64,000 nt of DNA from Macrostomum lignano. Its lineage: Eukaryota. The notes under the pieces are model-generated. The model searched no databases, was not told the DNA's origin, and was given only the letters and a program-made list of their open reading frames with translations. How positions within the stretch are numbered: the first letter of the stretch is position 1; every line of letters starts with the position of its first letter. The translations under genes were made by a program, and so were the position numbers. Positions 10,841-64,000 of this stretch are shown here, piece by piece. The DNA is taken from assembly GCA_002269645.1 (NCBI GenBank), contig NIVC01000160.1:1-64000 (forward strand), given 5' to 3'.

Positions 10841-10961
10841 CACGGATTACAAGAATCCACACAGGCCGTACCTCAGCTGACCTGATTGTCAAATTCACAC
10901 ACACACAGGCCCAGTCAGAACAATCGGGTTTAATTAAAGGTAATTAAAGGTAATTAAAAAT

Positions 10962-15512
<4,551 letters not shown>

Positions 15513-36000: not shown

Positions 36001-37018
36001 GGTTTTTTATTTTTTAGTTCCGAGTTATGATTTCTGAGTTCCGGGTTATAATTTTCGAGTTCCGGGTTATAATTTTCGAGTTCCGGGTTATGATTTCTGA
36101 GTTGCGTGTTATGATTTTTGAGTTCCCGGTTATGATTTCTGAGTCCTGGGTTATTATTTCGCATTATGGTTAAATATGTGAGCTGCTTTGGTATGATCTC
36201 ATAAATTCAGGTTATGATCTCATAAATTCAGGTTATGATCTCATAAATTCAGGTTATGATCTCATAAATTCAGGTTATGATCTCATAAATTCAGGTTATG
36301 ATCTCATAAATTCAGGTTATGATCTCATAAATTCAGGTTATGATCTCATAAATTCAGGTTATGATCTCATAAATTCAGGTTATGATCTCATAAATTCAGG
36401 TTATGATCTCATAAATTCAGGTTATGATCTCATAAATTCAGGTTATGATCTGAATTCTAATTGACCTCAGAATCCTAGCAAAATCAAGTTCAACAACTTC
36501 CCCCTCCCACTCCCCAGGTGAACTCCCTCCTAGCGGACATGCTGCACTCCACCTGTTTCCACTTCCGGCACAGCCTGCCCTGCACTCTGGCAGCTCTGCA
36601 CTTCCACACGGAGGTCACGGACGAGAGCTGCCTGCAGACGGTGCTGACAGGCGACTGCGTCAGGCAGACCGCGCCTCAGGGCGGCCTGTTGCTGGGCACA
36701 GCCAGTGGGGTGCTGCTGTGCTCCGGCTGCCATCCGCCGGGCCGGTCCGTGGCCAACTACCTGGGCAATTTGGACTTTTTCTTCATCCGCGAGACCAGCT
36801 CCGTGAGAGACTGCGGCGGCTCGCAGGCCTTCCTGCACACCTGTCTAGCCGAGGTGATGGCCGTGGTTCGAGCCCACGCCGCCGCTTTGGGCGGCCAAGC
36901 CGTGACCTCGTTTCACCTGAGCGAAGTGCTGCTGCTGGATAACCCGAGCAGAGGACACGCCCAGTGCCTGCTGAACGTGTGCGGTGATGTGGTCCAGCTG
37001 CCGGTGGCTGAGGCCTGA
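27080..37018 (+). CDS. C2CD5: C2 domain-containing protein 5 (C2CD5/CDP138), 886 aa; exons 27080-27343, 27923-28233, 31358-31808, 32499-32784, 33399-33588, 33671-33976, 35357-35708, 36518-37018
   Basis: MPGRVRVKILSARNLPVMDRAS..DAFVE..SLNPQWNTEWFKFE..DAIGK|VYIDLNPLL..GWFPLYDTMHGIRG..GFVEELVVNDDPEYQW..RASNEARQRL..GGNAVIGY..FDLEGESGIVVRGIGTA..RDAWWSEIR..LPFIEYELHSQL..VRAHAAALGGQAV..AQCLLNVCGD, colinear with vertebrate C2CD5 as recalled. Phases are consistent and intron 1 is GC-AG. Confidence 0.95.
27470..27890. repeat. 30-bp minisatellite TGGTTCAATGATTAGAGATCTAGAGACATG in C2CD5 intron 1
   Basis: Direct periodicity; source of the MIRDLETCGS ORF prefix. Confidence 0.92.
28414..28707 (-). mobile_element. 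tRNA-derived CORE-like SINE, copy 2, with (ATC/ATT)n 3' tail
   Basis: Its reverse complement aligns along its length with 14894-15170; simple-repeat tail at 28414-28433. Confidence 0.85.
28708..31273 (-). repeat. 17-bp minisatellite GGGGGTTGTAGCCTAGT (~150 copies) equal to the SINE 5' head/A-box
   Basis: The + strand unit is ACTAGGCTACAACCCCC; it is contiguous with the SINE copy 2 head and identical to the head of copy 1. Confidence 0.95.
31860..32450. repeat. ~49-bp minisatellite TGATTGGCTGTTTGGATAGTCACCCACCTCACTCCGGTTCTGCGATCTC in C2CD5 intron 3
   Basis: Direct periodicity. Confidence 0.93.
32865..33365. repeat. 42-bp minisatellite AGCCAGCCAATCAGAATGAGAGCTGGTAGGAGTGAGGTGGGT in C2CD5 intron 4
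   Basis: Direct periodicity; partial reverse complement of the 31860 array. Confidence 0.93.
35722..36160. repeat. 21-bp minisatellite CCGGGTTATGATTTCTGAGTT
   Basis: Direct. Confidence 0.94.
36190..36450. repeat. 21-bp near-perfect minisatellite ATAAATTCAGGTTATGATCTC
   Basis: Direct. Confidence 0.96.
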
Positions 37019-40223: not shown

Positions 40224-43200
40224 ATGCCCTGCTTTCACTGCAACGGGTTCTACAGCGCGTGCGATGACCAGCCGGTGTGCCCCGTGTGCCACTCCTTCCT
40301 CTATCAGTACCAGTGCACCGCCCTGAAGCGCGACGACGAAGACGGAGACTCCGGCACCGAGGAGGAAGCCGCTGCTCACGCTGCTGCCGCCGCCGTCGGC
40401 CCGTCGGGTGCCGCTTCTGACGATGAGGCCCAGCAGCTGCGGCAGTTGCGACAGCAGCAGCAGAAAAAGTTGTTGCAGCAACAGCTGCGGCAGCAGCAGC
40501 AACAGCAGCCTCTGCCATCTAGCAGTGTAAATGCGAGAGCCAGTGACCTGGAGCTTCAGAGTTTGAGTTCCGGAGTGACTTTTGGGGCTTCAGTGTTTGA
40601 GTTCCGGAGTGACTTTTGGAGCTTCAGTGTTTGAGTTCCGGAGTGAATTTTGGAGCTTCAGAGTTTGAGTTCCGGAGTGACTTGGAGCTTCAATGTTTGA
40701 GTTCCGGAGTGACTTTTGGAGCTTCAGTGTTTGAGTTCCGGAGTGACTTGGAGCTTCAATGTTTGAGTTCCGGAGTGACTTTTGGAGCTTCAGTGTTTGA
40801 GTTCCGGAGTGACTTGGAGCTTCAGTGTTTGAGTTCCGGAGTGACTTTTGGAGCTTCAGTCTTTGAGTTCCGGAGTGACTTTTGGAGCTTCAATGTTTGA
40901 GTTCCAGAGTGACTTGGAGCTTCAATGTTTGAGTTCCAGAGTGACTTGGAGCTTCAATGTTTGAGTTCCAGAGTGACTTGGAGCTTAAATGTTTGAGTTC
41001 CAGAGTGACTTGGAGCTTCAATGTTTGAGTACTATCTCAGAGCACCATCGCACCCCCTCCGCAGAGCTCAGCGCAGTCGCGCGGTGCCCGCCTTGACGCC
41101 CTGCCAACCGAGCTGATTCTGGCCGTGTTGGCTCACTGCGACGACATGGCGGTCTGGTCGCTGCTCCGCCTTGGCAACCGGCGGCTGACCCAGATTATCG
41201 AACGGGAGTTCTCCGACGCCTACTGGCAGCGGCAGCTCAGCCACCGGTGGCCCCTGTTCACCCTGCGCCGGCCCCTGGGCGCCGGCACCTGGCGCTCTCT
41301 CTACTCGGATCTGCTGCTGAGCGCGCCCTGTCTCGCCTGTCTCGCCAGCGGGCCCTCCAGTTGGGACGTCGACGAAGCGTCGTCGTGGCGACAGCGCCGG
41401 CTGAGGCTGGAGTACCGCAGCCTTATACAGGAGCCGCCCTACGGCGTGGCGGCCGTGCCGACGCCCGTGGACAGCGGCCGGCTGTCCCAGTGGCATGCCG
41501 TCATCTGCGGCCCGCCCGGCTCCCCCTATCAGGGCGGAGCCTTCTTCCTGTCTCTGACTGTGCCGCACAGCTACCCGCTGCGACCGCCGTTGATTCGCTT
41601 CCTGACTAAGGTGGGCGAGGGGGTGAACTGTGTTTGCGTTTTACCCGCCTTGAAATCGTTTCTAAAACCATCGGGAAATCGCCCCAAATTTCATGAGAAT
41701 CGTCCCTAAACAGTTTTATACAAGGTAAATTAGTTAACCACCTAAAAATCACACAATCACACTAACCCACCCCAAGAATCAACCCTAGGAATCAACCCAA
41801 TAATCGCTCCTAAGCCCCAAAAATCGCCCCTAAACCACCCCAAGAATCGCCCCTAAACTACCCCAAGAATTACCCCTAAACTACCCCAAAAACTGCCCCT
41901 AAACCACCCCAAGAATCGCCCCTAAACTACCACAACAGTCGCCCCTAAACTACCTTAGGAATCGCCCCTTAACTACCACAACAATCACCCCTAAACTACC
42001 ACAACAATCGCCCCTAAACTACCCTAAGAATCGCCCCTAAACTATCCCTAGAATCGCCCCTAAACTACCTTAGGAATCGCCCCTTAACTACCACAACAAT
42101 CACCCCTAAACTACCCTAAGAATCGCACCTAAACTATCCTAAGAATCGCCCCTAAACTACCCTAAGAATCGCACCTAAACTACCCTAAAAATCGCCCCTA
42201 AACTACCTTAGGAATCGCCCCTAAACTACCCCAAAAATCGCCCCCAAACTATCCCTAGAATCGCCCCTAAACTACCTTTGGAATCGCACCTAAACTACCC
42301 CAAGAATCGCACCTAAACTATCCTAAGAATCGCCCCTAAACTACCCCAAGAATTGCCCCTAAACTACCACAACAATCGCCCCTAAACTACCACAACAATC
42401 GCCCCTAAACTACCACAACAATCGCCCCTAAACTACCCACAGAATCGTCCCTAAATCACCCACAGAATCGCCCCTAAATTATCCCAAGAATCGCCCCTAA
42501 ACCACCCCAAGAATCGCCCCTAAACCACCCCAAGAATCGCCCCTAAACTACCACAACAATCACCCCTAAACTACCACAACAATGGCCCCTAAACTACCAC
42601 AACAATCGCCCCTTAACTACCACAACAATGGCCCCTAAACTACCACAACAATCGCCCCTAAACTACCACAACAATCGCCCCTAAACTACCTTAAAAATCA
42701 CCCCTAAACTATCCCTAGAATCGCCCCTAAACTACCTTAGGAATCGCACCTAAACTACCCCAAGAATCGCACCTAAACTATCCTACGAATCGCCCCTAAA
42801 CTACCCCAAGAATCGCCCCTAAACTACCACAACAATCGCCCCTAAACTACCACAACAATCGCCCCTAAACTACCACAACAATCGCCCCTAAACTACCCAC
42901 AGAATCGTCCCTAAATCACCTACAGAATCGCCCCTAAACTACCACAACAATCGCCCCTAAACCACCCCAAGAATCGCCCCTAAACCACCCCAAGAATCGC
43001 CCCTAAACTACCACAACAATCGCCCCTAAACCACCCCAAGAATCGCCCCTAAACTACCACAACAATCGCCCCTAAACTTTATCCTTAAATCCTTTAATCG
43101 ACAGTGAACCCTGCGTAAACTAGTCAAATACCCCGAATTAACTGCCACCCCAGGTGTTCCACCCCAACGTGAGTCGTCACGGAGACGTGGGCCTGGACGC

Positions 43201-43447
43201 CATCTTGCCAACCAACTGGAGCCTGGCCCTCACCCTGGCCAAAGTGCTGGTCTGTGTTCAGAGCCTACTCACGGACCCCTACACCGAGGTGAGCATGGAG
43301 CCCAGGATCGCCCGGCTGTGCATCGAAAACCGGCCAGAATTCGAGCGGCTGGCCCGCCTGTGGACCTGGAAGTACGCCATGCACGACTTTGTCGGGCCTT
43401 TGGCTGCGACCGACGAACCGGCGGGTGACGGCGGTGGTGACTTGTAA
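40224..43447 (+). CDS. morgue: Morgue-like ubiquitination protein (zinc finger + F-box + E2 variant lacking the catalytic Cys), 380 aa; exons 40224-40526, 41065-41610, 43154-43447
   Basis: N-terminal CFHC-x12-CPVC; F-box LDALPTELILAVL; UBC fold RRLRLEYRSL..WHAVICGPPGSPYQGGAFFL..YPLRPPLIRFLTK|VFHPNVSRHGDVGLD..WSLALTLAKVL..SLLTDP..WTWKYAM, with Gly at the catalytic Cys position. Phase-0 junctions AGT|GTAAAT..CGCAG| and AAG|GTGGGC..CCCAG|. Confidence 0.9.
40540..41030. repeat. 32-34-bp minisatellite GAGTTCCGGAGTGACTTTTGGAGCTTCAGTGTTT in morgue intron 1
   Basis: Direct. Confidence 0.94.
41770..43075. repeat. 23-bp minisatellite CCCTAAACTACCCCAAGAATCGC in morgue intron 2
   Basis: Direct; shares CCCCAAGAATCGCCCCTA with the 39165 array. 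Confidence 0.95.
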
Positions 43448-45890: not shown

Positions 45891-46435
45891 TTGATGCATG
45901 TGTGTGTACTCAAGCAGACTCACCCAGTGCAACTCAGCAGCCCGTGCATACTCTTACTCAAGAGAATATGAATCCGAATTGGAGTTTAGCACAGCTGATA
46001 AACTTTCATTTCTAACTCTCTCTCATCAGAGCTCTGGCTGCTCTCTGTTTGAACTGCTGGTTGTTCATTCAGCATGCAGCCCTTTCTGCATGGCCATTTT
46101 GCCCGATCATGTGGGCATATTTATCTAATTACACAATTAGCAGAAGTGGCTTCGACAATGCAGCAATGCAAGGCAACGCAGACGATAGAAACCGGCTGTG
46201 CAAAAGACAAGACTCTTCTTCTTCTTTTTGCGAGGCTCTCAAAATATTCTGCCCATATATTGGCACAGGCTATATTAGAAAGCCGAAAAGAAGAGAAGGG
46301 AGAGAGTGTTTTGAGCAAATTGTTTATAAATCTGTTTCAGTGCTGTCGTGTCATTTTTTTAATCTTTGAATGTAGAATTTATGGAATTATTAATCATTGC
46401 TGCCTGAGTACAGCTGGTATCGGTAGTTTTCATTG

Positions 46436-46613
46436 ATGGCATCCAACAGCGGCAGCAGCAATATCAGGCGATTCAGTTTGAAGCCAACAACAACTGGCGC
46501 TTCTCCTAGTAGCAGCAGCGCCGGCAGCAATGCTGCAACAAGTAGCGCGGGACCGGGTCCTCAGTTGCTATCGTCTGCTAGGGGTGTTGGCGGAAAGACG
46601 GCCAGTTTGAGAG
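46436..46613 (+). CDS. Candidate alternative first coding exon A of the nesprin-like gene (MASNSG...TASLR|D)
   Basis: ATG-initiated, strong donor GAG|GTAAGT, phase 1 matching the acceptor at 60061; joins to give [14 protein letters not shown]. Confidence 0.7.
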
Positions 46614-46654
46614 GTAAGTCGCCCGATCCTTGGCAGCTTTTGGATGCGATTTCA

Positions 46655-46910
46655 TCCTGTACTGTGTTTGGGTAATCCTGTACTGTGTTTGAGTAATCCT
46701 GTACTGTGTTTGGGTAATCCTGTACTGTGTTTGGGTAATCCTGTACTGTGTTTGAGTAATCCTGTACTGTGTTTGGGTAATCCTGTACTGTGTTTGGGTA
46801 ATCCTGTACTGTGTTTGGGTAATCCTGTACTGTGTTTGGGTAATCCTGTACTGTGTTTGGGTAATCCTGTACTGAATTTGAGTAATCATGTAATGTATTT
46901 GGTAATCCTG
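46655..46910. repeat. 21-bp minisatellite AATCCTGTACTGTGTTTGGGT
   Basis: Direct. Confidence 0.94.
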
Positions 46911-49190
46911 TACAGGTACACTTGTCCTGTATTCGGGTAGTGTACTGTGACCTGATGTACTTTACTGAAACTAAATGTAATGTGCTCTGGACAAATCATG
47001 TACAACTGAACTGTTACCTGATCAACCTGTACTTTGCATTTACAGTACATGTATCTGGGATATATGCGGGTATACTGGGTAGTACAGGTACTGCGTAATA
47101 TACATTAACTGTCAATTTTACACACACGTGTAAAGAGATCGAGACTCCCAAAAACAGCTGACTCATGCATGGTTTACAATTCTCTAATACGTACATTGCT
47201 CGTACTACATGGGACTACTGGTTAGGTAGTAGCGAGTATCGGCTTAACATATTATTTTTTTAAATATTTAACTTTTAACTGTAGCCATGATCAAAACCCC
47301 TCAATTCAAATTCATAGTTAATACCTGACTTAAAATAATGTTGATTGACTTGTTAAACTGTTTAAATAGTAAAAGCGAAAAGCTAAACTAAATTTCGGAA
47401 CACCTATGCTATTATCAGACTGGAAATCTCATGCGCATGGCAAGAAGACCGATTCTATAGTCCTGTACATGTCCAGCGCTTACTTTTCGCGTAAACATAA
47501 TTTATGCGCTAAAATAGCTAGTACAATGCGAATTGGCTCCCAAGCAGTTCTATTCTACAGTAGAAGCTGGATGGGTTGGCCGTGGGAGAATCGCATTTAT
47601 TTAAGCGGGCTTGAGTGGAGCTTTACGTCGTAATATTGACTCTATTGAGTCACGACTCACTCCACACTACTCTTGAAAGCACTTTGTTCTGAAACTGTGA
47701 CCCACCTCCACAAGTCGCAACCCTAAATCCGACCTTGACCTTGAGTTCCTACAAAGCGTTGTTCTTAAGTAGGAAATTGACAAAGACAGTTTACTGGAAG
47801 CCTATGCTTGAGTATTGAGTTCACTCAAGCCCCCCCCCCGGACCGGAATAAAGAACGAATCATGAAAACCTATTATTAGCCCTTCCCTACGCCGATAAGA
47901 ATACAACCTTATCAATCAAACGTATTCCTCATATTCCGAAATTTATAGGGATTTTCTACGAGCTTTTCCTCATGTTTGGCAAATTTCGGCAAAGTTTGGC
48001 ACTCCAGCCCCTCAAAAAAGCGCATTACCGTAACGTGTAATGTTTTCCGTACTTTATCTACTGATTTCGTATGTACATTTAAAAATAGGGCCCTACCTAA
48101 TAATAAAGAACCGTTTATAGTATCTACATTGACTTTCTCTTGGGGAGGGTTCAGGGCTTTTCCCTAACAGTCCACCCCAACCCCTCAACCCCCAATTCCG
48201 AAACCCCCGAACAAACCCTTATTTCCTACGCACGTATTGGAGGAGGGGGGGGGTTTGGTCTCCTCACCAAGTCCCCCAAATCGGTTTGAAAAAAAAAGTA
48301 ATAGGGCTTCAGTTCAGAATAAGGAAAGGCTTCTAAACCGATTGGGCTCCCCCCGCTGTGCGTGTTTAGTAATGTGAAATTATATGCGAGAGACGGCGCC
48401 CCCCAGACCAACCACCCCACCCGCCTCCTCAAAGCTGTCCCCCCTGGGCTATACAACTGAACTTGAACTGAAACTGCAACACAAACCCCGGACCAACCAA
48501 CCTATAATATAATATTAGGCGTGCAACCAACAAACTCGTACTGAATTCATTCCAAAACAGTGCTGAATTAAGAGGAGAGTCAGGGTGTTTTTTGTTATTT
48601 AGCAGCGAGCAAACAATTGATTAATTTATATAGATTGTTTACTTTTTTACAAGTACACTCGACCTTGCTACTTTGAAACCAATCTGCATTTTAACTTGCT
48701 TCTTCAACTTCCTGACCTGAGACGAAGTTTTCTTAGCTACTTCCTATTGCACTTAGCTGGCTTATGAGTTGGTAATCTTTACCTCTTAGCTTCTTATTTG
48801 CTTAAATTAAATGCTTAAAATTAAATCCTGAACTGAATCTGCGCATGAGCATTTAAATTGGCCAATTAAGTTATTTTTTAATTATTGCAACTACGTTTCG
48901 AGGTGGAACTCTATTTTTTTCCTGACCATCAACACAGACGACACTTGACGAACTCTGACCATGGTTTACCGTTACTATTTCTCCTGGACTGATTTATTTT
49001 TATATTGACATTCTGAGCTAAACCAATTAATGATATGAGCGTATCAGTGGCGTATCACCGATTAAGAGGTAAGGCTTTATAATATCGCTTTGTAAGTGTA
49101 CAATTATTAATTTATTATTTATTTATATTGAATACGTACAGAAAATCCAGAGGCAAAAGTACAATAATTCATTCGTGACGATACTTTGTG

Positions 49191-49385
49191 CAGGGGCGTA
49201 GCCAGGAATTTCCTACGGGGGGGGGATACACCAAGGTGAATTTCCTACGGGGGGGGGATACACCAAGGTAAAAGTGCTCACATGGTAGCATGTATAGCGA
49301 AAAAGTGCAACAAAAAAGTTTTGGTCAGGCTCTTCGGGGGGGGGGGGGGATACATCCCCCCTGATCCCCCCTCCCTACGCCACTG
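49191..49385. mobile_element. hAT-like MITE with 8-bp TSD ACTTTGTG
   Basis: Termini CAGGGGCGTAG / CTACGCCACTG; ACTTTGTG at 49183-49190 and 49386-49393; internal ~31-bp tandem duplication. Confidence 0.88.
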
Positions 49386-50454
49386 ACTTTGTGTGCAAAC
49401 ACAGGCTGAGACAGCTGACTCAAATTAATTTACTTGAAGATTATTAACGAGTTTTTTATATAATTTTCGTTTTGGCTTTAGTTTATGTATTGATTTGAAT
49501 TCAGAGTACTATCTAAGGAATTCATATACCTATTACCTTAATGCCTTATGCCTTATGGCGTAAACGTACAAGCGTAAATTAACATCTACTGATCTTATGA
49601 TGACCAAAAAACAATTTGAATTGGTGCCAAAACTGATGATTATTATTGATCACGTGCTATATATCAAAGGGTTTTCCCTTCGAGTAAAAATTAAAGTCAA
49701 AGAAGCTTAACGCCGTCTCCCCGCAATTAAAGCAGAGTTTTTTTTTCGTTACAATTTTTTGTCGAAGTTTTCTCGCATTTTTACTATCAGTAGCGCAAAT
49801 CGAGAATTTCGCTCACTTTCTGATTGTTCGCAAGGGATTGTTTGATGAACCATATTTAGCTTAGACAATAAAGAGCTTTACAAAATTCTCCTAGAGAGTG
49901 CTCTGGGAATGACATCGGAGCGATGATAAGGGAGGGACTCAGGATCGCTCCCATTCACTCACTCACAGTCTCACACTTCTGTATAGGCTGTATCGGGAAA
50001 TACCTAACCTTGAATATATTGCAAATGCATAGCTCATTGTTTATGTGCTGTAACACTGCTGTGCGAGGGACAATGGGACTCTAGGACTAAGGAGTGCGTA
50101 TTTAAAGAAGCTTTTAACGCGCACTCGTTGCTTGAGGCTGGATGAAAAAACCTTTAGCCATTGAGTTGAGGGCAAAGCCGGATGTCTATGCATTTCAGTT
50201 CCTTGTCATTCTTTTTTGGAGTTTTTTAACTTCTTTGACTCTGCAGCTGTTTGTCTTCTCAGACTGCCAGAATTGCAGAAATGCTTTGAATTTGCTGAAG
50301 ACTGTAGTGGAGTAGCGCTCATCCATCCATCAATGTCTGCTCCGTCATCTGTCTAAGACATCTATTTATAGAAACAACTGAAGCACTGGCAAACAAGACC
50401 AGAAACTGTTCTATTTTTTCGTCTTTTTTACCAACAGTTTTGTGTCAAGAAGAG

Positions 50455-50895
50455 CGAGGAGTGCCAAGATAGGCATTCAAGGAGTGCCAAGATAGGCATG
50501 CGGAGAGTGCCAAGATAGGCGAGCTAAGAGTGCCAAGATAATCATGCGAGGAGTGCCAAGATAGGCGAGCTAGGAGTGCCAAGATAGGCAAGCTAGGAGT
50601 GCCAAGATAGGCGAGCTAGGAGTGCCAAGATAGGCGAGCTAAGAGTGCCAAGATAATCATGCGAGGAGTGCCAAGATAGGCGAGCTAGGAGTGCCAAGAT
50701 AGGCAAGCTAGGAGTGCCAAGATAGGCGAGCTAGGAGTGCCAAGATAGGCGAGCTAGGAGTGCCAAGATAGGCGAGCTAGGAGTGCCAAGATAGGCGAGC
50801 TAGGAGTGCCAAGATAGGCGAGCTAGGAGTGCCAAGATAGGCGAGCTAGGAATGCCAAGATAGACGAGCTAGGAGTGCCAAGATTGGTATGCGGG
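50455..50895. repeat. 23-bp minisatellite GAGTGCCAAGATAGGCGAGCTAG
   Basis: Direct. Confidence 0.94.
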
Positions 50896-51424
50896 AGTGC
50901 AGTTACTTTTACCGTATGAAGAGTACTTAAAGCACTTAGTTACCCACCATCATAAACGGTCATAGGCCATAGCCCCACACTGCCACTAACAAAAAAAATG
51001 CTATTCTACTCGTGTATGCTTAAACTCATATATATCAAAATATTACTCTCAACTTTCTGAGGCCAAACCAGTGCTAAAAACTCGAACAATAGAACAAATG
51101 GAAGTTAGTTATTAGAAGAAAGATAGTCGGGGGTGTGACTGCAATTCTTAGTCAGGGTGTGATTTAATTAATTGACACCCTCTGACCACTTGCGAACCAC
51201 TTGAGTTGCTTCAGATTCATTATGCCTTCACATGAACTACGGAATTGTGCTAGCTTAGGCTCAATTTCGAGTTACATATGGAACATTGCTGAACTTTCTC
51301 TTTTGTAAAATGGTATGAAAACTTTTTGTTTAGTGATTGACAGGTAACGCATTTTGATGCGTTTTGTGTTATTATTTCTTAAATACTTTATTTATTGAAT
51401 GAGCGTTGGTTGGTTAGCTAGCTA

Positions 51425-51992
<568 letters not shown>

Positions 51993-53271
51993 CCGGACAT
52001 TGATTTCGACATAATAAAAAATAAAATAGGATTTCTCATTCTTTATCAGCCCGGCAGGTAAACGAATCGGAGAAAGGCGAGCAATTATCCGCACAGTGAG
52101 CGGTGCAGACTATAGCACTATATATACCTATACGAGACCTAAGTATGACCTCATTCACGGAAATGGACGGGGCGGGGCATGCAGGGGTGGACGCGTCAGC
52201 TGAGAGAGGAGGAGAAATTAGGAGCGGCTCGCCAAAGGTATATATGAGCTCTTCCCTTACCTCCCAGGTGACTTGCAGTCCCCAATTCCATTTCCGTACG
52301 AGTACTTCTGTGTGCGGGGAGGGGCACGGGGAGGTTATCTGTCATGCAGTTGCTGGGAGCTAAACCCCCGATGCGTTCCCATTTTCCTGGCTTGCATTGA
52401 GGAAGGAAAGACCTTGGAGGAGCGGGGGTGGGTGTTGCCCAGATACAGCCGTGAGCAGTTGCTACTCTTCTCTGTGGCAACTCATGGATAGGCAGTGCAG
52501 AGGGGAAATGTACTCAAAACTCCACCCCCTCGGCAACCAACCCAGCTATAGTGATTCAAAATCCTAAGTCCTGTGCTTCTCTACCTCCCACCTTTTTTAA
52601 CTGGCCTATCGCTCACCCACCCGCACGTGGGCTCAGCTTAGCAACTATCTCAGGAATTTGCGCACACCGTACACCGCGGGTTTTGCAATTTCTATACAAT
52701 TTTTACATCGTTTCATTTCCCTTGTGGCAGGCTGGTATAAACGCAAGACAGACACGGACAGACAGGCGCAGGAACGCCCAAAAAGAAAGTTTTTTATATT
52801 GTAGATTTCCTCGTCCCAAATTTGCCTCACCAGTAAATTCCGAGCACTGAGTGAGAAGACAGAGAGCAGGAAGTCCGGCTCGCTGCTGCGCCTTACATTT
52901 CTTAGAATTTCTCTGATTTAAGATAAGTAGATCGAGAACAGTTTAGGGGTCCACCGTATTGGTCTTTCATTTCACCCCCCAGAAACTTGCTCAGCAACCC
53001 GCGGCCCTCCAATTGCGGCGGCCACCATTTCCTGTCGATTCTCTCTCCCTCCTTCTCCCCCTCACTTAAATAAAAAGAAAAGTCTTGAAAAAGGTTTTTG
53101 CACTGCGCCATTGCGTTATATAGCTCAGACTGACTTGAAGCGCTGGAACCCCTCACAGCAAGAGACGTCATCGCAGAATTAATTGACAGAATGAAAGCTT
53201 TGAATGTTAAAGTAATTTACGTACAAGGTTAAGATTCAGCAAGCAGGTGTGTATTGAAGTACAGCTAGAAC

Positions 53272-53374
53272 ATGAGTTGGATAAGACGCGAATCGTCAGA
53301 TGACAGTTCAGGAGGTCGGCGGCGTATTGACAAACGAAGGTCAGAAATTGAGTCGAGGGCATTGTTCTACAGAG
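53272..53374 (+). CDS. Candidate alternative first coding exon B of the nesprin-like gene (MSWIRR...LFYR|D)
   Basis: ATG, perfect donor GAG|GTGAGT, phase 1. Confidence 0.62.
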
Positions 53375-53394
53375 GTGAGTACCGGCTTCTGGGT

Positions 53395-54725
53395 TCTATG
53401 GTTTCCCAAGTTCAAGGTCATCGATCTTCAAGGTCATTTCTTGTAGGGTCACTGGATTTTATGGTCCCCCAAGTTCAAGGTCATAGGTCCTTAAGGTCAG
53501 TTTTTATAGAATCACTGTATTCTATGATTCCCCAAGTTCAAGGTCATAGATCGGCAAGGTCATTTCTTGTAGAATCACTGTATTCTATGGTCCCCCAAGT
53601 TCAAGGTCATAGGTCTTCGAGGTCATTTCTTGTAGGGTCACTGGATTCTATGGTTCCTCAAGTTCAAGGTCATAAGTCCTCAAGGTCATTTCTTGTAGGG
53701 TCACTAGATTATTTGGTTCCCCAAGCTCAAGGTCATAGGTCCTCAAGGTCATTTCTTGTAGGGTAACTAGATTATTTGGTTCCCCATCCCAAGTTCAAGG
53801 TCATAGGTCCTCAAGGTCATTTCTTGTTGAATCACTGTATTCTACGGTTCCCCAAGCTCAAGGTCATAGGTCCTTAAGGTCATTTCTTATAGAATCACTG
53901 TGATCGAGTGATCGAATCACTGTATTCTATGATTCCCCAAGTTCAAGGTCATCGATCTTCAAGGTCATTTCTTGTAGGGTCACTGGATTTTATGGTCCCC
54001 TAAGTTCAAGGTCATAGGTCCTTAAGGTCATTTCTTATAGAATCACTGTATTCTATGATTCCCCAAGTTCAAGGTCATATATCGGCAAGGTCATTTCTTG
54101 TAGAATCACTGTATTCTTTGGTCCCTTAAGTTCAAGGTCATAGGTCCTCAAGGTCATTTCTTATAGAATCACTGCATTCTATGATTCCCCAAGTTCAAGG
54201 TCGTAGATCGGCAAGGTCATTTCTTGTAGAATCACTGTATTCTATGGTCCCCCAAGCTGAAGGTCATAGGTCCTTAAGGTCATTTCTTATAGAATCACTG
54301 TATTCTATGATTCCCCAAGTTCAAGGTCATAGATCGGCAAGGTCATTTCTTGTAGAATCACTGTATTCTATGGTCCCCCAAGCTCAAGGTCATAGGTCCT
54401 CAAGGTCATTTCTTGTAGAATCACTGTATTCTATTATTCCCCAAGTTCAAGGTCATAGATCGGCAAGGTCATTTCTTGTAGAATCACTGTATTCTATGGT
54501 TCCTCAAGTTCAAGGTCATAGATCGGCAAGGTCATTTCTTGTAGAATCACTGTATTCTATGGTCCCCCAAGCTCAAGGTCATAGATCGGCAAGGTCATTT
54601 CTTGTAGAATCACTGTATTCTATGATTCCCCAAGTTCAAGGTCATAGATCGGCAAGGTCATTTCTTGTAGAATCACTGTATTCTATGGTCCCCAAGGTCA
54701 TAGATTCAAGATCACTAGGTCCTCA
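53395..54725. repeat. 63-bp minisatellite CCCCAAGTTCAAGGTCATAGATCGGCAAGGTCATTTCTTGTAGAATCACTGTATTCTATGGT-type
   Basis: Direct; source of the 21-aa repeat ORFs at 53272 and 54181. Confidence 0.94.
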
Positions 54726-55249
54726 AAGTCATATTTTCCATGTCGGTGCAGTTAAGTCAGAATTTTAATATCGCCGACAACTTAAGTTGGTGGCTTCATG
54801 CATCATCAGATTTTACTTTGGAAAACTGATTTTCTCTCTAACCCATGTGTTGCTAGGGCAGTACAGCTCTGCCTTTGTGGGCAATTCTCAAGTAGCAAAT
54901 TCTGTTATTTCAGTCATTAAGCTAACAACTCTCTGCAAGCGTGTTGAGATGATGAAGTTTTTTTCAAGTAGCAATTTGAGTGAGTAGTCAGTGCAGTGCA
55001 GGCAGAGTGGAAAATTGGCTTGCATTATGAGTAGCAGTGTACTGGTTTATTGCTACCGGGTCACTGTTACTGGTCTTGCAGGTGCTGGGTTAGTTCAATA
55101 AGTTTCCCAAGGCTATTTTGTGACCAGATTGAGAAGGCTTAAATTTGCCTTGTAAACTTTACTACATTTATTGTGCCGTTATAAAATTTTCTGAGGATAG
55201 TTTTGAGAGAATAAACGAAATCCTATTGAAATCCCAATAGCTAATTCTA

Positions 55250-55420
55250 GTCCCATCCAGATCCCAAATTCTGAATGTCTCATTATCCTATTTAGATCCA
55301 AATTCTGAATGTCTCATGATCCCATTTAGATCCAACTTCTAAATGTCTACTGATCCCATTTAGATCCTAATTCTGAATGTCTCATGATCCCATTTAGATC
55401 CCAATTCTAAATGTCTCATG
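55250..55420. repeat. Short ~35-bp tandem repeat GATCCCATTTAGATCC.AATTCTGAATGTCTCAT (4-5 copies)
   Basis: Direct. Confidence 0.85.
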
Positions 55421-57167
55421 ATCTCTGTAGTCAATGTAGTCAAAAGTACAACAAAGCTCGTATAGAAGTACATTGACGATAGCCAAACTATTAACCATAT
55501 AGGCAAGCATCCGAAGGCATCAATTGTTTAAATTCACCTCGGGCGCATGCATGCAGGATGGTTCACTCAGGTAGCAAGTGAGTGAGTGAGTGAGCGAGTG
55601 AAGGTGAGAGCGGGAGAAGCGTGAAATGGGAATTTCAGTTGCGTGTTTTCCGAACAGGGGTGGGCGAAGCAAAGCGCCAGTTCAACAACAATAGCTGCTG
55701 CTACTCAACTCACGGATCCATCTATGGCTCCTCGTCATGCATGAAGTATTAATATAGATAGAGTTGGCAAACACTCAGCCGTTCCTATATGCTGGAAAAC
55801 CGCCTTTGTGCGTTCAGTAAGTAGCCGGGTCGATGTGTGGGGATAAGGCAACGCAGGACATACAAGCAGCATTGTTACTGACTTGCCTATTGCCACTGGG
55901 TTCTTCTCTAGTGGCATGTTAATCAACTGCATCTCTGGAGGCTGCGCGGGACACCAGAAATGTCGGCGCTCCATTTTCTAACAGAAAGAAAAGCCAGACC
56001 AGGTGCTTGAACTTCTCAAACTTGAAAAAACTCTGCCCTACCCCCTACCCCGGGAACTTTGAGTCGTGTTTCTGCATGGCATGCAAAAGTCTGAGTTATT
56101 ATTCAGCTAGAGGTTCCGGAGTGTTTCTTGAACCTGAACCTCTCCGATTGTTGAACTTCCTGACTCCTTTGGATGATAATGTGGAGATTGGGATTGCGCG
56201 GTGCCTTCGTGATGGATCTTTCTTCTGCCGGGGCCAATTTGAGGCTTTGCGCATTTTGAAAATTTTTTCCTAATTGTTCAATTATAGTGCAGAAATTCTG
56301 GCAAGCACAAATGAGTGCTTTTAGAATATAAAATTTTCCCCATAGTTTTTTGCGTTTTCTTTGATAAAGGATGAATTATGTAGGTAAATTCCTTATAATC
56401 CTTACTCAGAGCTGTCTACTTGCAGTAGAATAATTTGCATATTTTTCATTTCTCTTCCATTTCTCTCATCGTAATTCACTATCTGCATGCAATGCTTGAT
56501 CTACAGAACAACGAATTGACCAACGTAGGTTTAAAATTGCAGGCAGTTCTTTCTGATTTCACTCATTACCTCTCCCGCTAGTATTTATAATCTTTGCCGC
56601 GCTCAATAAGTTATGAGTATGTCAATAACTCTGAATAAAATGGTGAGCTCAATGTTGACTTTAGCCTTGCTCTGCTGCTATAAATACGCGCCGGGCCGGC
56701 CAGAGATTGACTCTTTCGCCATTTTGTCTGGCAAAAATGCCATCGAATAGAAATGTCTCCCCCCCAATGCGCTCTCTTGACCTGAGCAATCCCAGTTATT
56801 ACCTATCCAAGTTTATAGTTACCTATGCGGGCTTACCTTGGGAACGCGGAGTTTTAAGTACTGCCAAAGCCTCCACTATAAGAGCTCGGACGCCAGTTGC
56901 CTCAGCTCTGTATCGTCCGTAGCAATCTGCCCCGTGCACCAGAAGACAAGTTACACAAAATTAGCATAATTCAAGCTTAGTCATAGCTATCTTTGACTTA
57001 GAGATAAGATATGCGATTACATATAAGTACAATGCGACTGGCTCAGCCTTGACTCTTGTTCGTCAGTGTTAAAGAATTCGCAGTTGAACACACTGAAATC
57101 CAAAGTTACTGGAGCAAATTGCAATAGGTTCCATTTCTTTGCCCCATCGAGAGATGTCGTAGGTGCA

Positions 57168-57228
57168 ATGCTGGATTTATTGGCAAAGAATGGCAGATAT
57201 TATGCTAGAGGACAACCCATTCCGGAAG
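57168..57228 (+). CDS. Candidate alternative first coding exon C (MLDLLAKNGRYYARGQPIPE|D)
   Basis: ATG preceded by a TAG| acceptor, strong donor AAG|GTAAGC, phase 1; no homology support. Confidence 0.4.
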
Positions 57229-57502
57229 GTAAGCTGCTCAAACAGGAAGGTTTTGAGATTGGCGCAATGCAAGTACACAGTGGGTTATTGAAGATTGTAC
57301 AGCGAAACTGCTCTGAGTCGTCTCATGGCTCAGCTATACGAGCTGTTTAGGTTAAATTATTAATTAGGACCTGGCTCCTAGCTCCAATGCCACCGCGATA
57401 AAATACGCTAGAAGAGGGTGTGTAGATACAAAATTTCTAATTTAAACTTGGTTTGAGTATAGAGAAAGACCCTCGTGCCTCAGAGGCTGAGGACTCAAAG
57501 GC

Positions 57503-58046
57503 ATGGCTACTCAAGAGCCCGACCCGGATGACGTCAACTTTCCGGCTTTCTACGAAATCAACGACCGAATTTCGCAACCTGAGGAGGAGAATGAGCTGCT
57601 ATTGTTGCCGATCAACGAGTTGAGTGACAGCTTGGTGTTGCACCGGGCCAGGTGGCTTGAGGCGTTCAGTACTACAGAGGTTACAGAGGCTGCTGATTTT
57701 GAACATCCTGACAATATCGATGGCCAAGAAGTGTCATCGAGCCGTCCTAGACTAGGCGCGCTCAAGGTGAAGTACAATCCAATCTACCAGTCCGAGGATG
57801 TGCCCGAGGGTTCCTTGATCCCGTGGCAATTCAAGTCTCATTTGTCGAATTCCACCAGAAAGCAATCCAGCAATTCCTTAGTAAGGCAGCAGGTAGACAC
57901 TGCCGAGGAAACATCCTTGATAGAGCCAAGAAGCCGCCGTCAGGTTAGCTGGCCTTCGCCGCGCGATGTTTTGAATCGGGCGGGCCTGCCGGAGGAGCCG
58001 CAGGACATCACAGATTTAATGGATGCCGCCATCGTTATTTATCGAT
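57503..58046 (+). CDS. Candidate long alternative first coding exon D (181 aa, MATQEPD...AIVIYR|Y); unspliced ORF continues to the stop at 58105
   Basis: 200-codon non-repetitive GC-rich ORF, upstream in-frame stop, donor GAT|GTGAGA in phase 1 (same hexamer as the C2CD5 exon 3 donor). Confidence 0.55.
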
Positions 58047-59215
58047 GTGAGAGCTCAATAGAGGAACTTCGTTTAGATTGTAAACATATTGAGCGCATAT
58101 CTTAGTATGGATGGATCTATTGGCTAACGGAGTCCGGTGCTATAGGTATGGGAACCCAGTACGGTGCAACATGTACGGAAACTCACTCAGTACAGTGCTA
58201 CGCCGTCTAGCTGTACATTACGGGAGTTCGTTGCTGGTGTGGTGAAGATTAGATAAAATAGTTAAGCTGCTGTTAAACAAGCGGAATTTTTATTTACTGA
58301 ATTTCTAACCGTTTCATAGAACAGGCAGATGACAGGTAAAAATTATATTTTGTATTATTCCATTTCACTAAGACTCAAGATGTGAAAATCTGTTTCTCAG
58401 GAAATAAGCAAGATTTTATTTAGTAAAATAAGCAAATGCCACGGTGTTTATTAATGCTAATTGTGTGCTATCCACAACTGTAGAAAATACAAACGAAAGC
58501 TGCGCTGTGCTATACAGGTGTCCCTGGACTGGACTCACCCTGTGTGCGCACCCACGCACGGCAAGGGTGTGTGTGCAGCTTGTGTGTGTACCTGCCCCAG
58601 TTACTACCTCAGTACTCTTCTCTACCTTTACCGAGCTCAAATCTAATTGGGCGACAGACGGGAAAGTTATAAGAACAATAATAATAGTAATAAACTATTG
58701 AGTACTTCGTTGCGCTACTGTGCTCAAAGCTATGTAGTTCGTACAAAGCTACTCGTGGTTGGTAGCCTCTGGTAGGTCAGCGAATTCAATGTCGAACTTT
58801 GTTATTTCGGCCGCTCACTTTGAAGACCGTTTCTTTCCATCCTATTATTTGGTTTGAAATAATAAAGACGAACGCTTGGGCAGAGAGGTTTGAGAACTCG
58901 CTCGGTGGCAGGTAGTTTTTCTTACCTGCTGTGTACAGCGAGCGGCGGGTCAGTGGATCAGTTTTGAGACCTGTTTAAAAACTGTGGAAAACAGCTTCTC
59001 ATAGGGTGGCAGTCTGAGACTGAGAGCAGAGTCAACACTCATAAATTTATAAAGATTAGAATAAACGTAAATCAGATCCTAACAGGTGTGTTGCTCCTCA
59101 GTCAAACGCTGACTCGAGGGGTCAGTGCGTGCATCTTCCTGAACCCCCTACCAATTTCCCAGTATTAATTTAGACTTTCATCTTTCTACAAAAAGCACCT
59201 GCGTCATTTTAAAAA

Positions 59216-59261
59216 ATGCAACGTCGCCAGAGTTTCATGAGCAATGTGAAAAACCTGCGAG
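59216..59261 (+). CDS. Candidate alternative first coding exon E (MQRRQSFMSNVKNLR|D)
   Basis: ATG, donor GAG|GTAAAA, phase 1; gives [14 protein letters not shown], matching the LQDEQE context of nesprins. Confidence 0.6.
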
Positions 59262-60060
59262 GTAAAAGCGGCCTTTCTAACTCTGATTCAGTGATACTTT
59301 TTCCGGATTTTGAACCCTTCCGCTACTTTAAAAATAGATCTTACATCCGCGCAAGGGTCAATTGCTACCGCAAACGCAATAGTTATTGCCAGGGGGAACT
59401 TGTATCCCCAACCCTAAAGAGCGTGTGCACCTTCACAGGAAATGTACGCAGAACCAAAGCCATGCAAGCTATAGGGGAAGATTCCACAGTAGGTGTTTTC
59501 TTCCCCAGGTTGCAGAAGACCCGACCTGCTTCCCCCCTAAACCCGCTGAAGCTGCTGTCCCCATCTGCTATTCGGGATGCTGCATTGAAAGTCAGCCAGC
59601 CTTGTTGCTAGGGGGGGGGGCGGTTCTCTGCGCATCTGCGCGCACGTTTGGCAAAAGAGAAAAAAATATTGCCTGGTACAGCGAAGGAATCCTGCGGGTT
59701 AGGCTGGGTTATAAATGGAACCGAGGGGAAGAGCGGGGAGAGGTCCATAGCCTGCCTTGACCTTGGCTTCTTCAGCAGCCCCGCATTATTGAAGCCAGTC
59801 TTCCAGTCCCGGCTTCATCATTAGCGTGGCCGCTTTATTGACTTGGTCTGGCGAGTTCTGCATTGACTGAGTCACTGGCTATGGCACAATTGGGCAGATT
59901 TCTTATATATTAGAACAAAGACTTTGAACGGAAGCTCGGCCATACAGTGTAGAATTTCTGGCGGAAGCTTCAATTATGAAGCGGTTCCGAAAGCGACTGA
60001 CGGCTTCCCTTCGAGCGTTTGATGCCGCACTGACTTTAACTCCTCACTCAACTCGCGCAG

Positions 60061-62888
60061 ATGAGCAGGAGCGAGTCCAGAAGAAGACCTTCACCAACTG
60101 GATCAACACCTACCTCATCCAGTGCCAGCCGCCCTGCAAGATTGCCGACTTGTTCCCCGAGGTCAAGGACGGCATCAAGCTGCTGCTGCTGCTGGAGGTG
60201 CTGTCTGGCCAGAAGCTGCCGCACGAGTCGAGAAAAGTCATGCAGCGAGTGCACTGCCTCAGCAATGTTCGAACTGCGCTCAGCTTTCTCGAGAGCAAAA
60301 AGGTGAGCCCTACTCATCAGATGTATGTTTTTTGGGCTGTATTAATTAATATTGAGTTGAGTCTTCTGGTTGAACTTAGATGTACTAGAAATTACTAATA
60401 CTTTTTACTCCCGCCATGCACTTTTGACGCATTTTGTGAGGATTCTGTAGTCTGAAAAGAAAACCTACATACCTACCTACCTACCTACCTACTTACCTAC
60501 CTACCTATCTACCTACCTACCTACCTGGCTACCTACGTACCTACTTACCTACCTAACTACCTACTTACCTACCTACCTACCTATCTACCTACCTACCTAC
60601 CTACCTACTTACCTACCTACCTACCTAACTACCTGCCTACCTACCTACCTACCTACTTACCTACCTACCTGGCTACCTACGTACCTACTTACCTACCTAA
60701 CTACCTACTTACCTACCTACCTACCTATCTACCTACCTACCTACCTACCTACTTACCTACCTACCTACCTAACTACCTGCCTACCTACCTACCTACTTAC
60801 TTACCTACCTACCTACCTACCTACCTATCTACCTACCTACCTAACTACCTGCTTACCTACCTACCTACCTACCTACTTACTTACCTACCTACCTACCTAC
60901 CTATCTACCTACCTACCTACTTACTTACCTGCCTGCCTACCTACCTACCTACTTACCTACCTACCTACCAACTACCTACCTACCTACCTATCTACCTACC
61001 TACCTAACTGCCTGCCTACCTACCTACCTACTTACCTACCTACCTACCAACTACCTACTTACCTACCTATCTATTTTCCTACCTACCTGCCTACTTACCT
61101 ACCTACTTACCTACCTACCTACCTACCTACCTACCTACATACCTACTTACCTACCTACCTACCTACCTACCAAAATTGTACTTTTGAAAAAAAAATGAAA
61201 AGGAAATCACTGGAAAGTTTACAAAAAACAGATCTGCATTTTGCTCCTAACGTTTCCTGTCGCTGAGCTGTACTATAATAAATTTTCTACTCAAACTGCG
61301 AACTGAGCCCAGTTTAAACCGCATCAACTGACTCGAGAACTAGATATCAGATTACCCCTGAAGAGGCAGGGTCTCGGCAAAAGTTAATTAACAATTTTTC
61401 TCGGCACAAACGTCTCTGCTGTTATTTTTGTTAGTTTGAAGCCACTTTGCGCTTCCGCTGGCATCGGGCTGGCCTCTACAGCCTCTCAAACACACCTCGG
61501 CTCGCTTCTTCATCGGCACGAAGAAGAGATTGCTTTCTAAAACAGAGCTGAGAGAGAAAGAGAATGAGACTGAGACCGAGGTCTAGATGGGTGTAACTAT
61601 CTCCGCATCACCTGCTGTGAGAGCCGTGCTGACAGACTCGGAGGCAGAGTTGAAAGAGACAAATTAATAGACCCCTAAGCTCAGGTAGCCAGCACTACCT
61701 GCCTGTCCCGCTCGCCACCCAGTCTCAGGGGGGTTGGCGTAGACTTCCTAGCCCAGTAGCTCAAGTGCAGCTCATAGTAGCGCATAGCTGTCAAACCCAT
61801 ATATAATAAGTTGCAGTTGCCATGGCGACCGTAGGCGCTATAGGCGAGAGAATATGCCATTCTGCCATTCTGTTTGGAGCGACTGCACTGCCGAGTTTTG
61901 TGCGTAGATCGCTCAATGGGTGGCTGTCTGGAGCCGAGTGCCACGTGAGGAATGCGCTTCGCATAGCGGGTTAGCGATGGCCAGTGTGCTCATATTTCTG
62001 GCCACAGGCTCTGGCTGCTGCTGCCTGTCTGCTAGCTAATTGGCTGCCAGAATTCTCTATCTATCTATCTATCTATCTATCTATCATCTATCTACCTACC
62101 TACCTACCTACCTACCTACCTACCTACCTACCTACCTACCTACCTACCTACCTACCTACCTACCTACCTACCTACCTACCTACCCACCTATCTGCTCACG
62201 AGTACCCATAGCTATCATCATATCTAGCGACTACATCTACCTACCTATCTACCTTTCTATCTACATCTACCTGCATATCTGCAGCTAACAATACCAATCT
62301 GTTTTATGCACCTGCATCTATCTACTTAGTGTGCTTGCAATTGCCTATTCTCTTGTCTTCCCGTGTCTATCATTAACCAAGGGTAATTTAATTTCGCCTA
62401 AAAGTTCACTGATCACCCCCCTCTTGAATCTTGATGACTCACTGCTGTGCTGGGTCTGACAAATCTGTGGCGCAGAAGATTTATCTGCGCATTTTTTGGG
62501 TTTCGAAATGAATCGACTTTTTTGCTGTTCACTTAAGCATTCGCCTTGATCGTCGAAAATGCCATGCATTCTTCCGTACCTGTTCTTTCAAAAGTAGTTA
62601 TACCTTTAAATCCCAGGTGTATAAATTCAATACTGCTGCAGAGTCAATATTCATTAAGGCCGACCCACTTTTTCATTTAGTGAAATAATTAGACCAACCG
62701 ATTAACACCCTGGAATAATAATTAAGCCATAAAACTCAGCCCAGGCAGAACTGATAAAGATCGAACCATTTTCACCTGCCGCAGATCAAGCTAGTCAACA
62801 TCAACCCGGCCGACATTGTGGACGGCAAACCTTCCATTGTGCTGGGCCTTATCTGGACAATTATCCTGTACTTCCAGCATTTCCCCAG
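60061..62888 (+). CDS. SYNE1: Nesprin-1/Msp300/ANC-1-like giant spectrin-family protein, N-terminal CH1 actin-binding domain; exons 60061-60302 and 62785-62888; gene continues beyond the window
   Basis: [61 protein letters not shown]|[31 protein letters not shown]. The [15 protein letters not shown] and [18 protein letters not shown] motifs fit nesprin/Msp300 better than plakins ([14 protein letters not shown]). Confidence 0.85.
60466..61171. repeat. (CCTA)n degenerate microsatellite
   Basis: Direct. Confidence 0.97.
61816..61829 (+). promoter_or_regulatory. Near-perfect palindromic RFX X-box GTTGCCATGGCGAC in a nesprin intron
   Basis: One mismatch to the GTTGCCATGGCAAC consensus; identical to the 14-mer at 18683. 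Confidence 0.45.
62055..62275. repeat. (TCTA)n/(CCTA)n compound microsatellite
   Basis: Direct. Confidence 0.95.
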
Positions 62889-63704
62889 GTGAGCAAACTG
62901 GGGTGGCGGCGCTCTTTATTGTAACAGCTGTAATAATTAACCTGTAATTATAGCTAAAATATATAATTGACTAATTGCTTTCGATAAACTATTACCTGAA
63001 CAGCTTGATCAGCCAATCATGGACTTGAGCCAATTGGTAATACAACCTACTCAAATCTGATCATTAATATGTTCTATGAGAATATATTTTACTCTCGATA
63101 AAAACATTTCATTGCTGAACTAATTTTATTTTTCTTTCAGGAATTGGTTGGTTAATTTTATATGCTTCTATACCCCCGTATTCGTATAGGATTGCCCTGG
63201 AATTTGAGGCAAATTTCACCTATCCATGTTTATCCACGAAAACGTAAACTGGAAAAGGTAGAAAGTTGGAAAAAGTTTTAAAAACTGAGGCTGTAGGGTG
63301 TTGGAACCCCGGAGCTATGAAAACCTTGGCAAATGGATAGATAGTGGCTGCTGCAAGTATTGCGTAACAAGTAATTGATTATCTGTCCCTCCCAATGCGA
63401 TTACGTCATCGCTTATTGCACACTGGATGGAGAAAAAGCCACAAATATGTTATTACTCCAGTTTCTGTTGCCAGTAAACTTTTTTGCGTCATTTTTATCC
63501 ACCAGAGTCTTCTGGAGCCTGTTTTTACTCCTTCGTTGATATTATTCTGCATAATAATGAAGACCCACAAAGTTTTCGTTTGCCCTATGACTGACGTCTG
63601 TCTATGCATCCTATGCTATCTGAAGAACATGTTTTTTAAACCTCCGAATGGATTCAGTATTTCTTTTTGTAGCAGTTTTGCGAAGCTTTTTGCGAAGCTG
63701 TTTT

Positions 63705-64000
63705 CCTGCAGTACAGCCTCCCGTCTCTACTCTACAGCTTCCCACCCCTGTACTACAGCCTTCCCATACCTACTCTAAGGCCTTCCTATCCCTACACAAC
63801 AGCCTTCCCAACCCTACACTATAGCCTTCACATCCCTACTCTACAGCCTTCCTATCCCTATTCTAAAGCCTTCCCATGCCTGCAATACAGCCTTCCTATC
63901 CCTACTCTACAGCCTTCCTTTCCCTACACTACAGCCTTCCTATCCCTACTCTACAGCCTTCCTTTCCCTACACTACAGCCTTCCTATCCCTACACTACAG
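63705..64000. repeat. 22-bp minisatellite CAGCCTTCCTATCCCTACTCTA (runs off the window end)
   Basis: Direct. Confidence 0.93.

Follow-up and report, generated by a model that had tools for sequence, protein, structure and literature searches.

We analyzed a 64,000-nucleotide stretch of the genome of the flatworm Macrostomum lignano (contig NIVC01000160.1, positions 1 to 64,000; hereafter, the window), which contains the 5′ region of a gene whose product starts with a nesprin/Msp300-type actin-binding domain. In this gene, at least three mutually exclusive first coding exons, here called e2, e4, and e5, probably feed a common exon that opens the first calponin homology domain (the CH1 exon) at position 60061. 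A first-pass annotation of the window had proposed that five alternative first exons, e1 to e5, feed this one CH1 exon. Gene models or conservation support e2, e4, and e5, and that part of the proposal stands; we found no support for e1 or e3.

The common CH1 exon (60061–60302, + strand; Pfam CH) begins at a phase-1 acceptor, GCAG|AT GAG CAG, and ends at a phase-0 donor, AAG|GTGAGC, its translation closing in LESKK, and it takes one nucleotide from whichever exon precedes it. The coordinates, ATG starts, and phase-1 donors given in the first-pass annotation for the five upstream segments, as well as the CH1 start at 60061, all proved exact, and four of the five segments (e1, e2, e4, and e5) do end in Arg, as had been claimed. 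Joined to CH1, the segments e1 to e5 in the order listed give the junction residues D, D, D, Y, and D. Among the three supported exons, e2 (53272–53374, + strand) encodes 34 residues, MSWIRRESS...ESRALFYR plus a phase nucleotide G, ahead of the donor GAG|GTGAGT. e4 (57503–58046, + strand) encodes 181 residues that are mostly predicted to be disordered and that end in the conserved tail DITDLMDAAIVIYR plus T, with the donor GAT|GTGAGA. The proximal exon e5 (59216–59261, + strand) encodes only 15 residues, MQRRQSFMSNVKNLR plus G, with the donor GAG|GTAAAA. Donors that match AG|GTRAGT perfectly occur only twice on the + strand of 43.5–60 kb, and they are the donors of e1 and e2.

Much of the evidence for e2, e4, and e5 comes from a second locus in the same species. 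The closest other protein, PAA63879.1 (P0016; BOX15_Mlig010703g3), maps to M. lignano scaffold NIVC01001808.1 (L001), where the CH1 exon is 84% identical to that of the window in protein and 81% in DNA. All of the DNA surrounding the exons is unalignable between the two loci, and we therefore regard L001 as an old paralogue. When 16 kb of the window was compared with 10 kb of L001 at an expectation value (E) of at most 1, the e2 end, the e4 end, and CH1 were the only collinear non-repeat blocks; the remaining matches were simple repeats, and e5 was too short to register at this threshold. The order e2-e4-e5-CH1 is identical in both loci, with the exons lying nearer to CH1 in the paralogue, at about one-tenth to less than half of the distances measured in the window. 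The paralogue shares the phase nucleotides of the three exons (G, T, and G), and some of the codon differences in the conserved exon ends are synonymous.

To put numbers on this conservation, the last 10 residues before each donor were scored against every phase-1 end that precedes a GT on the + strand of L001 1–10116, with 478 stop-free GT-preceding peptides from the window's own 46–60 kb as controls. The ends of e2, e4, and e5 scored 37, 36, and 35, respectively, against a control maximum of 25 and a control mean of 13. On this sequence evidence, the three ends are individually far above chance. The ends of e1 and e3 scored 10 and 6, under the control mean.

Deposited protein models contain two of the three exons. 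The e2-to-60061 junction is present in UniProt A0A1I8HKJ9 (P0121; "CH domain-containing protein", M. lignano), whose residues 1–146 correspond to e2, the CH1 exon, and the next exon at 100% identity to the window, a match that by itself assigns the window to M. lignano. It was the sole protein matched by the concatenated e4, e2, e3, and e5 peptides plus a read-through extension, and it was matched via e2. In the paralogue, the corresponding collinear position reads EARALFYR+G|GTGAGA, against ESRALFYR+G|GTGAGT in the window, and the differences between them include the synonymous codon pairs AGG/CGG, GCA/GCG, TTG/CTC, and AGA/CGA. For e5, the N-terminus of PAA63879.1 reads MRRSSLMTNVKSLR|DEQERVQKK, that is, the e5 homologue (e5′) joined to CH1. 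The annotation behind this model was made from RNA-seq assemblies (StringTie/TACO/TBONE/TransDecoder) (PMC5730564), and the e5′-to-CH1′ junction thus rests on the paralogue's transcripts.

The case for e4 is made by conservation. In the paralogue, a collinear, ATG-started frame of 178 codons ends in DITDVIDAAIVIFR+T|GTAAGA, the counterpart of the 181 codons that end in DITDLMDAAIVIYR+T|GTGAGA in the window. The last 14 residues are 79% identical, and several differences within this block fall at third positions and are synonymous; both loci also have a second collinear block, L.L..A.WL.AF. The phase nucleotide T is kept in both, giving Tyr at the junction, and the donor T|GT[GA]AGA is conserved as well. 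The similarity between the paralogues stops exactly at the GT, and the read-through tails beyond it are unrelated. e4 is also the longest non-repeat open reading frame upstream of CH1 in both loci (43.5–60 kb in the window). Because a frame that ran from e4 into e5 would terminate at a stop codon, the window offers e4 no productive partner other than CH1. The evidence for a shared acceptor therefore differs from exon to exon: for e2 it is the junction with 60061 in A0A1I8HKJ9, for e5 the e5′-to-CH1′ junction in the paralogue model, and for e4 the phase, the conserved donor, and the lack of another productive partner, from which we infer that e4 is spliced to 60061. A full HMMER search with e4 against 1.8 billion representatives returned a single hit, to a repeat protein; the match consisted of 10 short stretches, and we judged it to be spurious.

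In-frame stops lie 3–12 nucleotides upstream of the ATGs of e1, e2, e4, and e5; the stop of e2 is 3 nucleotides away, as is that of e5, a TAA. No phase-1 acceptor with a pyrimidine-rich tract is available to e2, only weak and unconserved acceptors are available to e4, and no phase-1 acceptor is possible for e5, which, given its upstream TAA, can serve only as a first coding exon and never as an internal one. The upstream stops and the lack of suitable phase-1 acceptors argue against serial splicing. e2, e4, and e5, each of which opens at the first ATG past its upstream in-frame stop, are thus best read as 5′ exons that exclude one another and bring their own start codons.

The phase-1 junction itself appears to be ancient. 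In a nesprin-type gene of Schistosoma curassoni (P0017; L002, 7413–7482 and 8490–8556), the first coding exon ends ...NHRL+G|GTATGG and the CH1 exon starts CATAG|AC GAA CAA, the same phase-1 split of the DEQ Asp codon as in the window. Any first exon added upstream in flatworms would have had to end in phase 1. The CH1 domain of S. curassoni is divided into more exons. We also observed that e5 (..SFMSNVKNLR|DEQE) is loosely like the start of vertebrate nesprin-1 (..DIANVMQRLQ|DEQE; P0007, P0009), with N-V and L in common; e5 may be the ancestral proximal first exon, the resemblance being too short for a test.

The assignment to nesprins follows from the CH domains, of which Pfam matches two in A0A1I8HKJ9, a model that ends after CH2. 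Among named proteins, nesprin-1 is the best match to the CH exons; identities were 64–69% with nesprin-1/Msp300-type proteins and 64–71% with Msp300-like open reading frames, compared with 51–55% for the CH domains of plectin, dystonin, MACF1, and beta-spectrin. A0A1I8HKJ9 aligns with vertebrate nesprin-1 without a gap across CH1, and YFQIEE and AKKALL.W.Q are common to both, whereas alignment with plectin (∼53% identity) needed two 2-residue gaps. Judged by these comparisons, the gene encodes a paired N-terminal CH-domain actin-binding domain of the nesprin type, and a spectraplakin/plakin-type CH1 is not the closest; the window covers the 5′ part of the gene, with the spectrin-repeat rod and KASH domain beyond its end, and the class call rests on the CH domains.

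Several points weigh against the reading of e2, e4, and e5 as alternative first exons. The pattern of an ATG-started segment that ends in a phase-1 donor is by itself within chance: among 18 GT[AG]AG sites on the + strand of 46000–60060, those that follow an ATG-started frame of at least 15 codons number 2, 4, and 0 in phases 0, 1, and 2, and the same count on the − strand, taken as a comparison, gave 1, 2, and 3. The first-pass annotation had itself cautioned that phases can match by chance and that its candidates were chosen post hoc; this caution holds, and the decision must therefore come from independent evidence. The two loci that supply the comparison are paralogues within one species and amount to a single independent comparison, and the gene model for e2 may be partly ab initio. 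Beyond its last 14 residues, e4 is not significantly similar overall between the loci (z about 0). It was absent from every deposited protein model in our protein searches, which were word-filtered and in which an absent hit is weak negative evidence, since the first CH-domain search missed the 100%-identical A0A1I8HKJ9. Ten guessed isoforms, which combined each first exon with CH1 and three alternative C-termini, were looked up exactly, and none was on record.

The window copy might, moreover, be damaged or mis-assembled at the donor of the next exon. This second CH1-domain exon (62785–62877, + strand; 100% identical to residues 116–146 of A0A1I8HKJ9) ends in ...ILYFQ at 62877 and is followed by CATTTCCCCAG (within 62867–62896) and then GTGAGC, so that 11 nucleotides (62878–62888) are inserted ahead of the first GT. 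The paralogue has TTCCAG|GTAATT at the same donor, without the insert, and the UniProt model runs on as YFQ|IEEQ. Use of the GT at 62889 would make the exon 11 nucleotides longer and would thus shift the frame. The 11 nucleotides may reflect an insertion, an indel made in assembly, or a lesion confined to the window copy. The exon that comes next is past the end of the window.

We weighed the alternatives with these points in mind. That each locus has one real first exon is unlikely but is the strongest of them: after the old duplication, the paralogues would have kept different starts, e2 in the window and e5 in L001, and the other conserved pieces would be relics or regulatory DNA. Deposited models are indeed of a single kind for each locus (e2 for the window copy, e5′ for the paralogue), and no model uses e4. 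However, all three exon ends, with their donors and phase nucleotides, survive in both loci amid DNA that cannot be aligned, and the substitutions in them conserve the amino acids; relics would not keep an open frame of ∼180 codons in both loci.

Slightly less likely again is that e4 is a separate small gene or an upstream open reading frame, unconnected to the CH1 exon. A paralogue similarity that ends exactly at a conserved phase-1 GT, with read-through tails that differ, is difficult to reconcile with this, as is the stop met on splicing to e5, which leaves CH1 as the sole productive partner in the window; the alternative draws on the facts that no model or homologue joins e4 to a CH domain and that most of e4 is fast-evolving and predicted to be disordered.

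We consider it very improbable that the whole battery is a post hoc chance pattern in which only the annotated first exon is real. The phase counts above are what such a pattern would give, and e1 and e3 show no conservation, but e2, e4, and e5 each scored at least 10 units above every one of the 478 controls, are collinear in the paralogue, and include two exons found in deposited models (e2 and, as e5′, e5). For these three exons, chance is already refuted; it stands for e3 and possibly for e1. Least credible of all is a series e1-e2-e4-e5-CH1 that forms one long N-terminus, which the shared phase 1 of all the donors would in principle permit for exons whose length is a multiple of 3, but which is contradicted by the in-frame stops just upstream of the e1, e2, e4, and e5 ATGs, by the want of a phase-1, stop-free acceptor for e5, of one with a pyrimidine tract for e2, and of any but weak, unconserved ones for e4, and by deposited models that join e2 and e5′ directly to CH1.

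We propose that alternative first exons would work as follows. Each would contribute its own ATG and one extra nucleotide and, being in phase 1, would join only the phase-1 acceptor of CH1 at 60061. The products would share the same actin-binding domain and would differ in N-terminal tails of 34 (e2), 181 (e4), or 15 (e5) residues. Conservation is confined to the last 8–14 residues of each tail, a hydrophobic stretch and then Arg, which selection would have kept. In an AlphaFold2 model of A0A1I8HKJ9, residues 13–53 form one helix in which the e2 tail continues into CH1 helix A; the predicted local distance difference test score (pLDDT) is 94 for residues 21–30. Modeled alone, e4 was predicted to be disordered, with a mean pLDDT of 38; three helices were predicted in it at low confidence, two of them at the two conserved blocks. 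Each tail would therefore be expected to lengthen and decorate the first CH1 helix while carrying a variable, mostly disordered arm. Such tails could conceivably tune binding or address the protein, as in plectin.

The exons would presumably each have a separate promoter, as opposed to a single promoter with alternative 5′ splicing or the addition of a spliced leader. RNA-seq (SRP082513 and SRR2682326), RAMPAGE 5′-end, and spliced-leader data are available for M. lignano (PMC5730564). We also considered a leader added at 60061; flatworm spliced leaders, as far as is known, end in ATG, and this ATG would be in the wrong frame for the CH domain. Read through the acceptor, an ATG at 59976 shares the frame of CH1 (59976–60060, MKRFRKRLTASLRAFDAALTLTPHSTRA+DEQ...). 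We considered it as a sixth start, with transcription beginning inside the e5-CH1 intron, and set it aside as unsupported; the paralogue has no equivalent of this ATG, and its intron at this place is 73 nucleotides long and unalignable.

This arrangement has parallels in other actin-binding proteins. Twelve first exons of plectin splice into exon 2 and dictate the isoform expression profile (PMC8468861). Plectin, and also dystonin, MACF1, and Drosophila shot, resembles the window gene in that several ATG-bearing first exons lie upstream of a common exon at the start of CH1 and place short-to-medium tails on an otherwise identical domain. It differs in that the CH domain of the window gene is of the nesprin type (64–69% identity, versus about 53% and two gaps for plectin), and in that plectin has a dozen first exons whereas the window gene, which is known from sequence and gene models, has three that are supported. 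Among nesprins, Drosophila Msp300 has the start exons 1, 3, 18, and 21; exon 1 (H-K) and exon 3 (D/L) both give CH-containing isoforms, and exons 18 and 21 are internal (PMC8616381; PMC11230431). Msp300 is thus, like the window gene, a nesprin with different start exons that give isoforms containing the CH domain. Unlike for the window gene, only two upstream starts have been described for it, and these are treated as general isoform complexity rather than as a tail-switching module. We detected no relation between the Msp300 exon sequences and e2 or e4. Mammalian nesprin-1 and nesprin-2 have many alternative 5′ ends (PMC3388047), which, unlike those of the window gene, are not alternative tails on the CH domain.

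The view in the first-pass annotation that a variable N-terminus is not a recognized nesprin feature was therefore overstated, given that exons 1 and 3 of Drosophila Msp300 both yield CH isoforms (PMC8616381). Alternative starts that feed a nesprin CH domain are already on record, and the arrangement described here is only partly new for nesprins. In the literature searched, we found no description of a nesprin with a plectin-like set of at least three coding first exons that splice directly to CH1, and a search of that literature for the gene identifier Mlig010703 found nothing. We would put at about even odds the fuller claim that this is a flatworm nesprin with such a plectin-like set of at least three coding first exons (possibly four, with e1), each ending in a conserved, helix-forming, Arg-terminated tail that abuts CH1, and kept in two old paralogues.

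If true, nesprins, like plakins and spectraplakins, would have been selected for the ability to switch tails at the N-terminus of their actin-binding domain. The first exon of plectin decides the cellular destination of the protein, and different diseases arise from mutations that affect particular isoforms. The nesprin literature that we searched centers on isoforms without the actin-binding domain and not on differences among the tails that precede it. In a transgenic flatworm that regenerates, a conserved switch among three tails would give a tractable system in which to ask whether N-termini address nesprin actin-binding domains to different structures. Gene annotation would also improve, as current models give one start per locus. 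The advance would be modest, with alternative promoters being common and two CH-feeding starts already recorded for Drosophila Msp300.

Of the two unsupported segments, e1 (46436–46613, + strand) is a candidate distal first coding exon of 59 residues, Ser/Ala-rich, with the perfect donor GAG|GTAAGT; an open frame of 62 codons is present there in phase 1 and in neither other phase. It has neither conservation nor a gene model. The one similarity that it shows, to L001 8181–8313 (E about 0.1–0.2), is a reciprocal hit but is weak, of low complexity, and not collinear, and we rejected homology with this segment as unproven, as the DNA alignment lacked a codon-wise pattern. The other segment, e3 (57168–57228, + strand; donor AAG|GTAAGC), encodes 20 residues, has no homologue in the paralogue by its exon-end score and no protein hit, and is most likely a chance match; a 20-codon open frame such as this one is expected by chance. 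No protein was hit at E ≤ 10 when e1, e3, and the four exons of the paralogue served as queries.

Between its e2 and e4 homologues, L001 contains two more ATG-started segments with phase-1 GTGAG donors, at 8181–8313 and 8480–8639, neither of which is in any protein model. Over L001 1–20371, two inverted and nearly identical copies of the nesprin 5′ region flank a gap of N at 10393–13078; they are either a true palindromic duplication or an artefact that arose when duplicated copies were assembled.

The nesprin 5′ region begins somewhere after ∼43.4 kb, because the last matched coding exon of an upstream gene lies at 43151–43381. This neighbor, upstream of e1 to e5, is a ubiquitin-conjugating-enzyme-like gene with an N-terminal extension (41395–43381, + strand). 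Further upstream, the window contains an M13 (neprilysin-like) peptidase (2664–5002, − strand), a tektin (19013–19537, + strand), and a C2CD5-like protein with C2 plus YbjQ-like domains (27032–37018, + strand).

The window is very heavy in tandem repeats, with 48 minisatellite rows over positions 1–45800 and 46654–64000. Examples are a 20-mer present 147 times at 6483–9430 and a 17-mer present 150 times at 28708–31270, and an array with a 63-nucleotide unit (53389–54700) begins 15 nucleotides past the e2 donor. These minisatellites generate many long, spurious open reading frames in the window.

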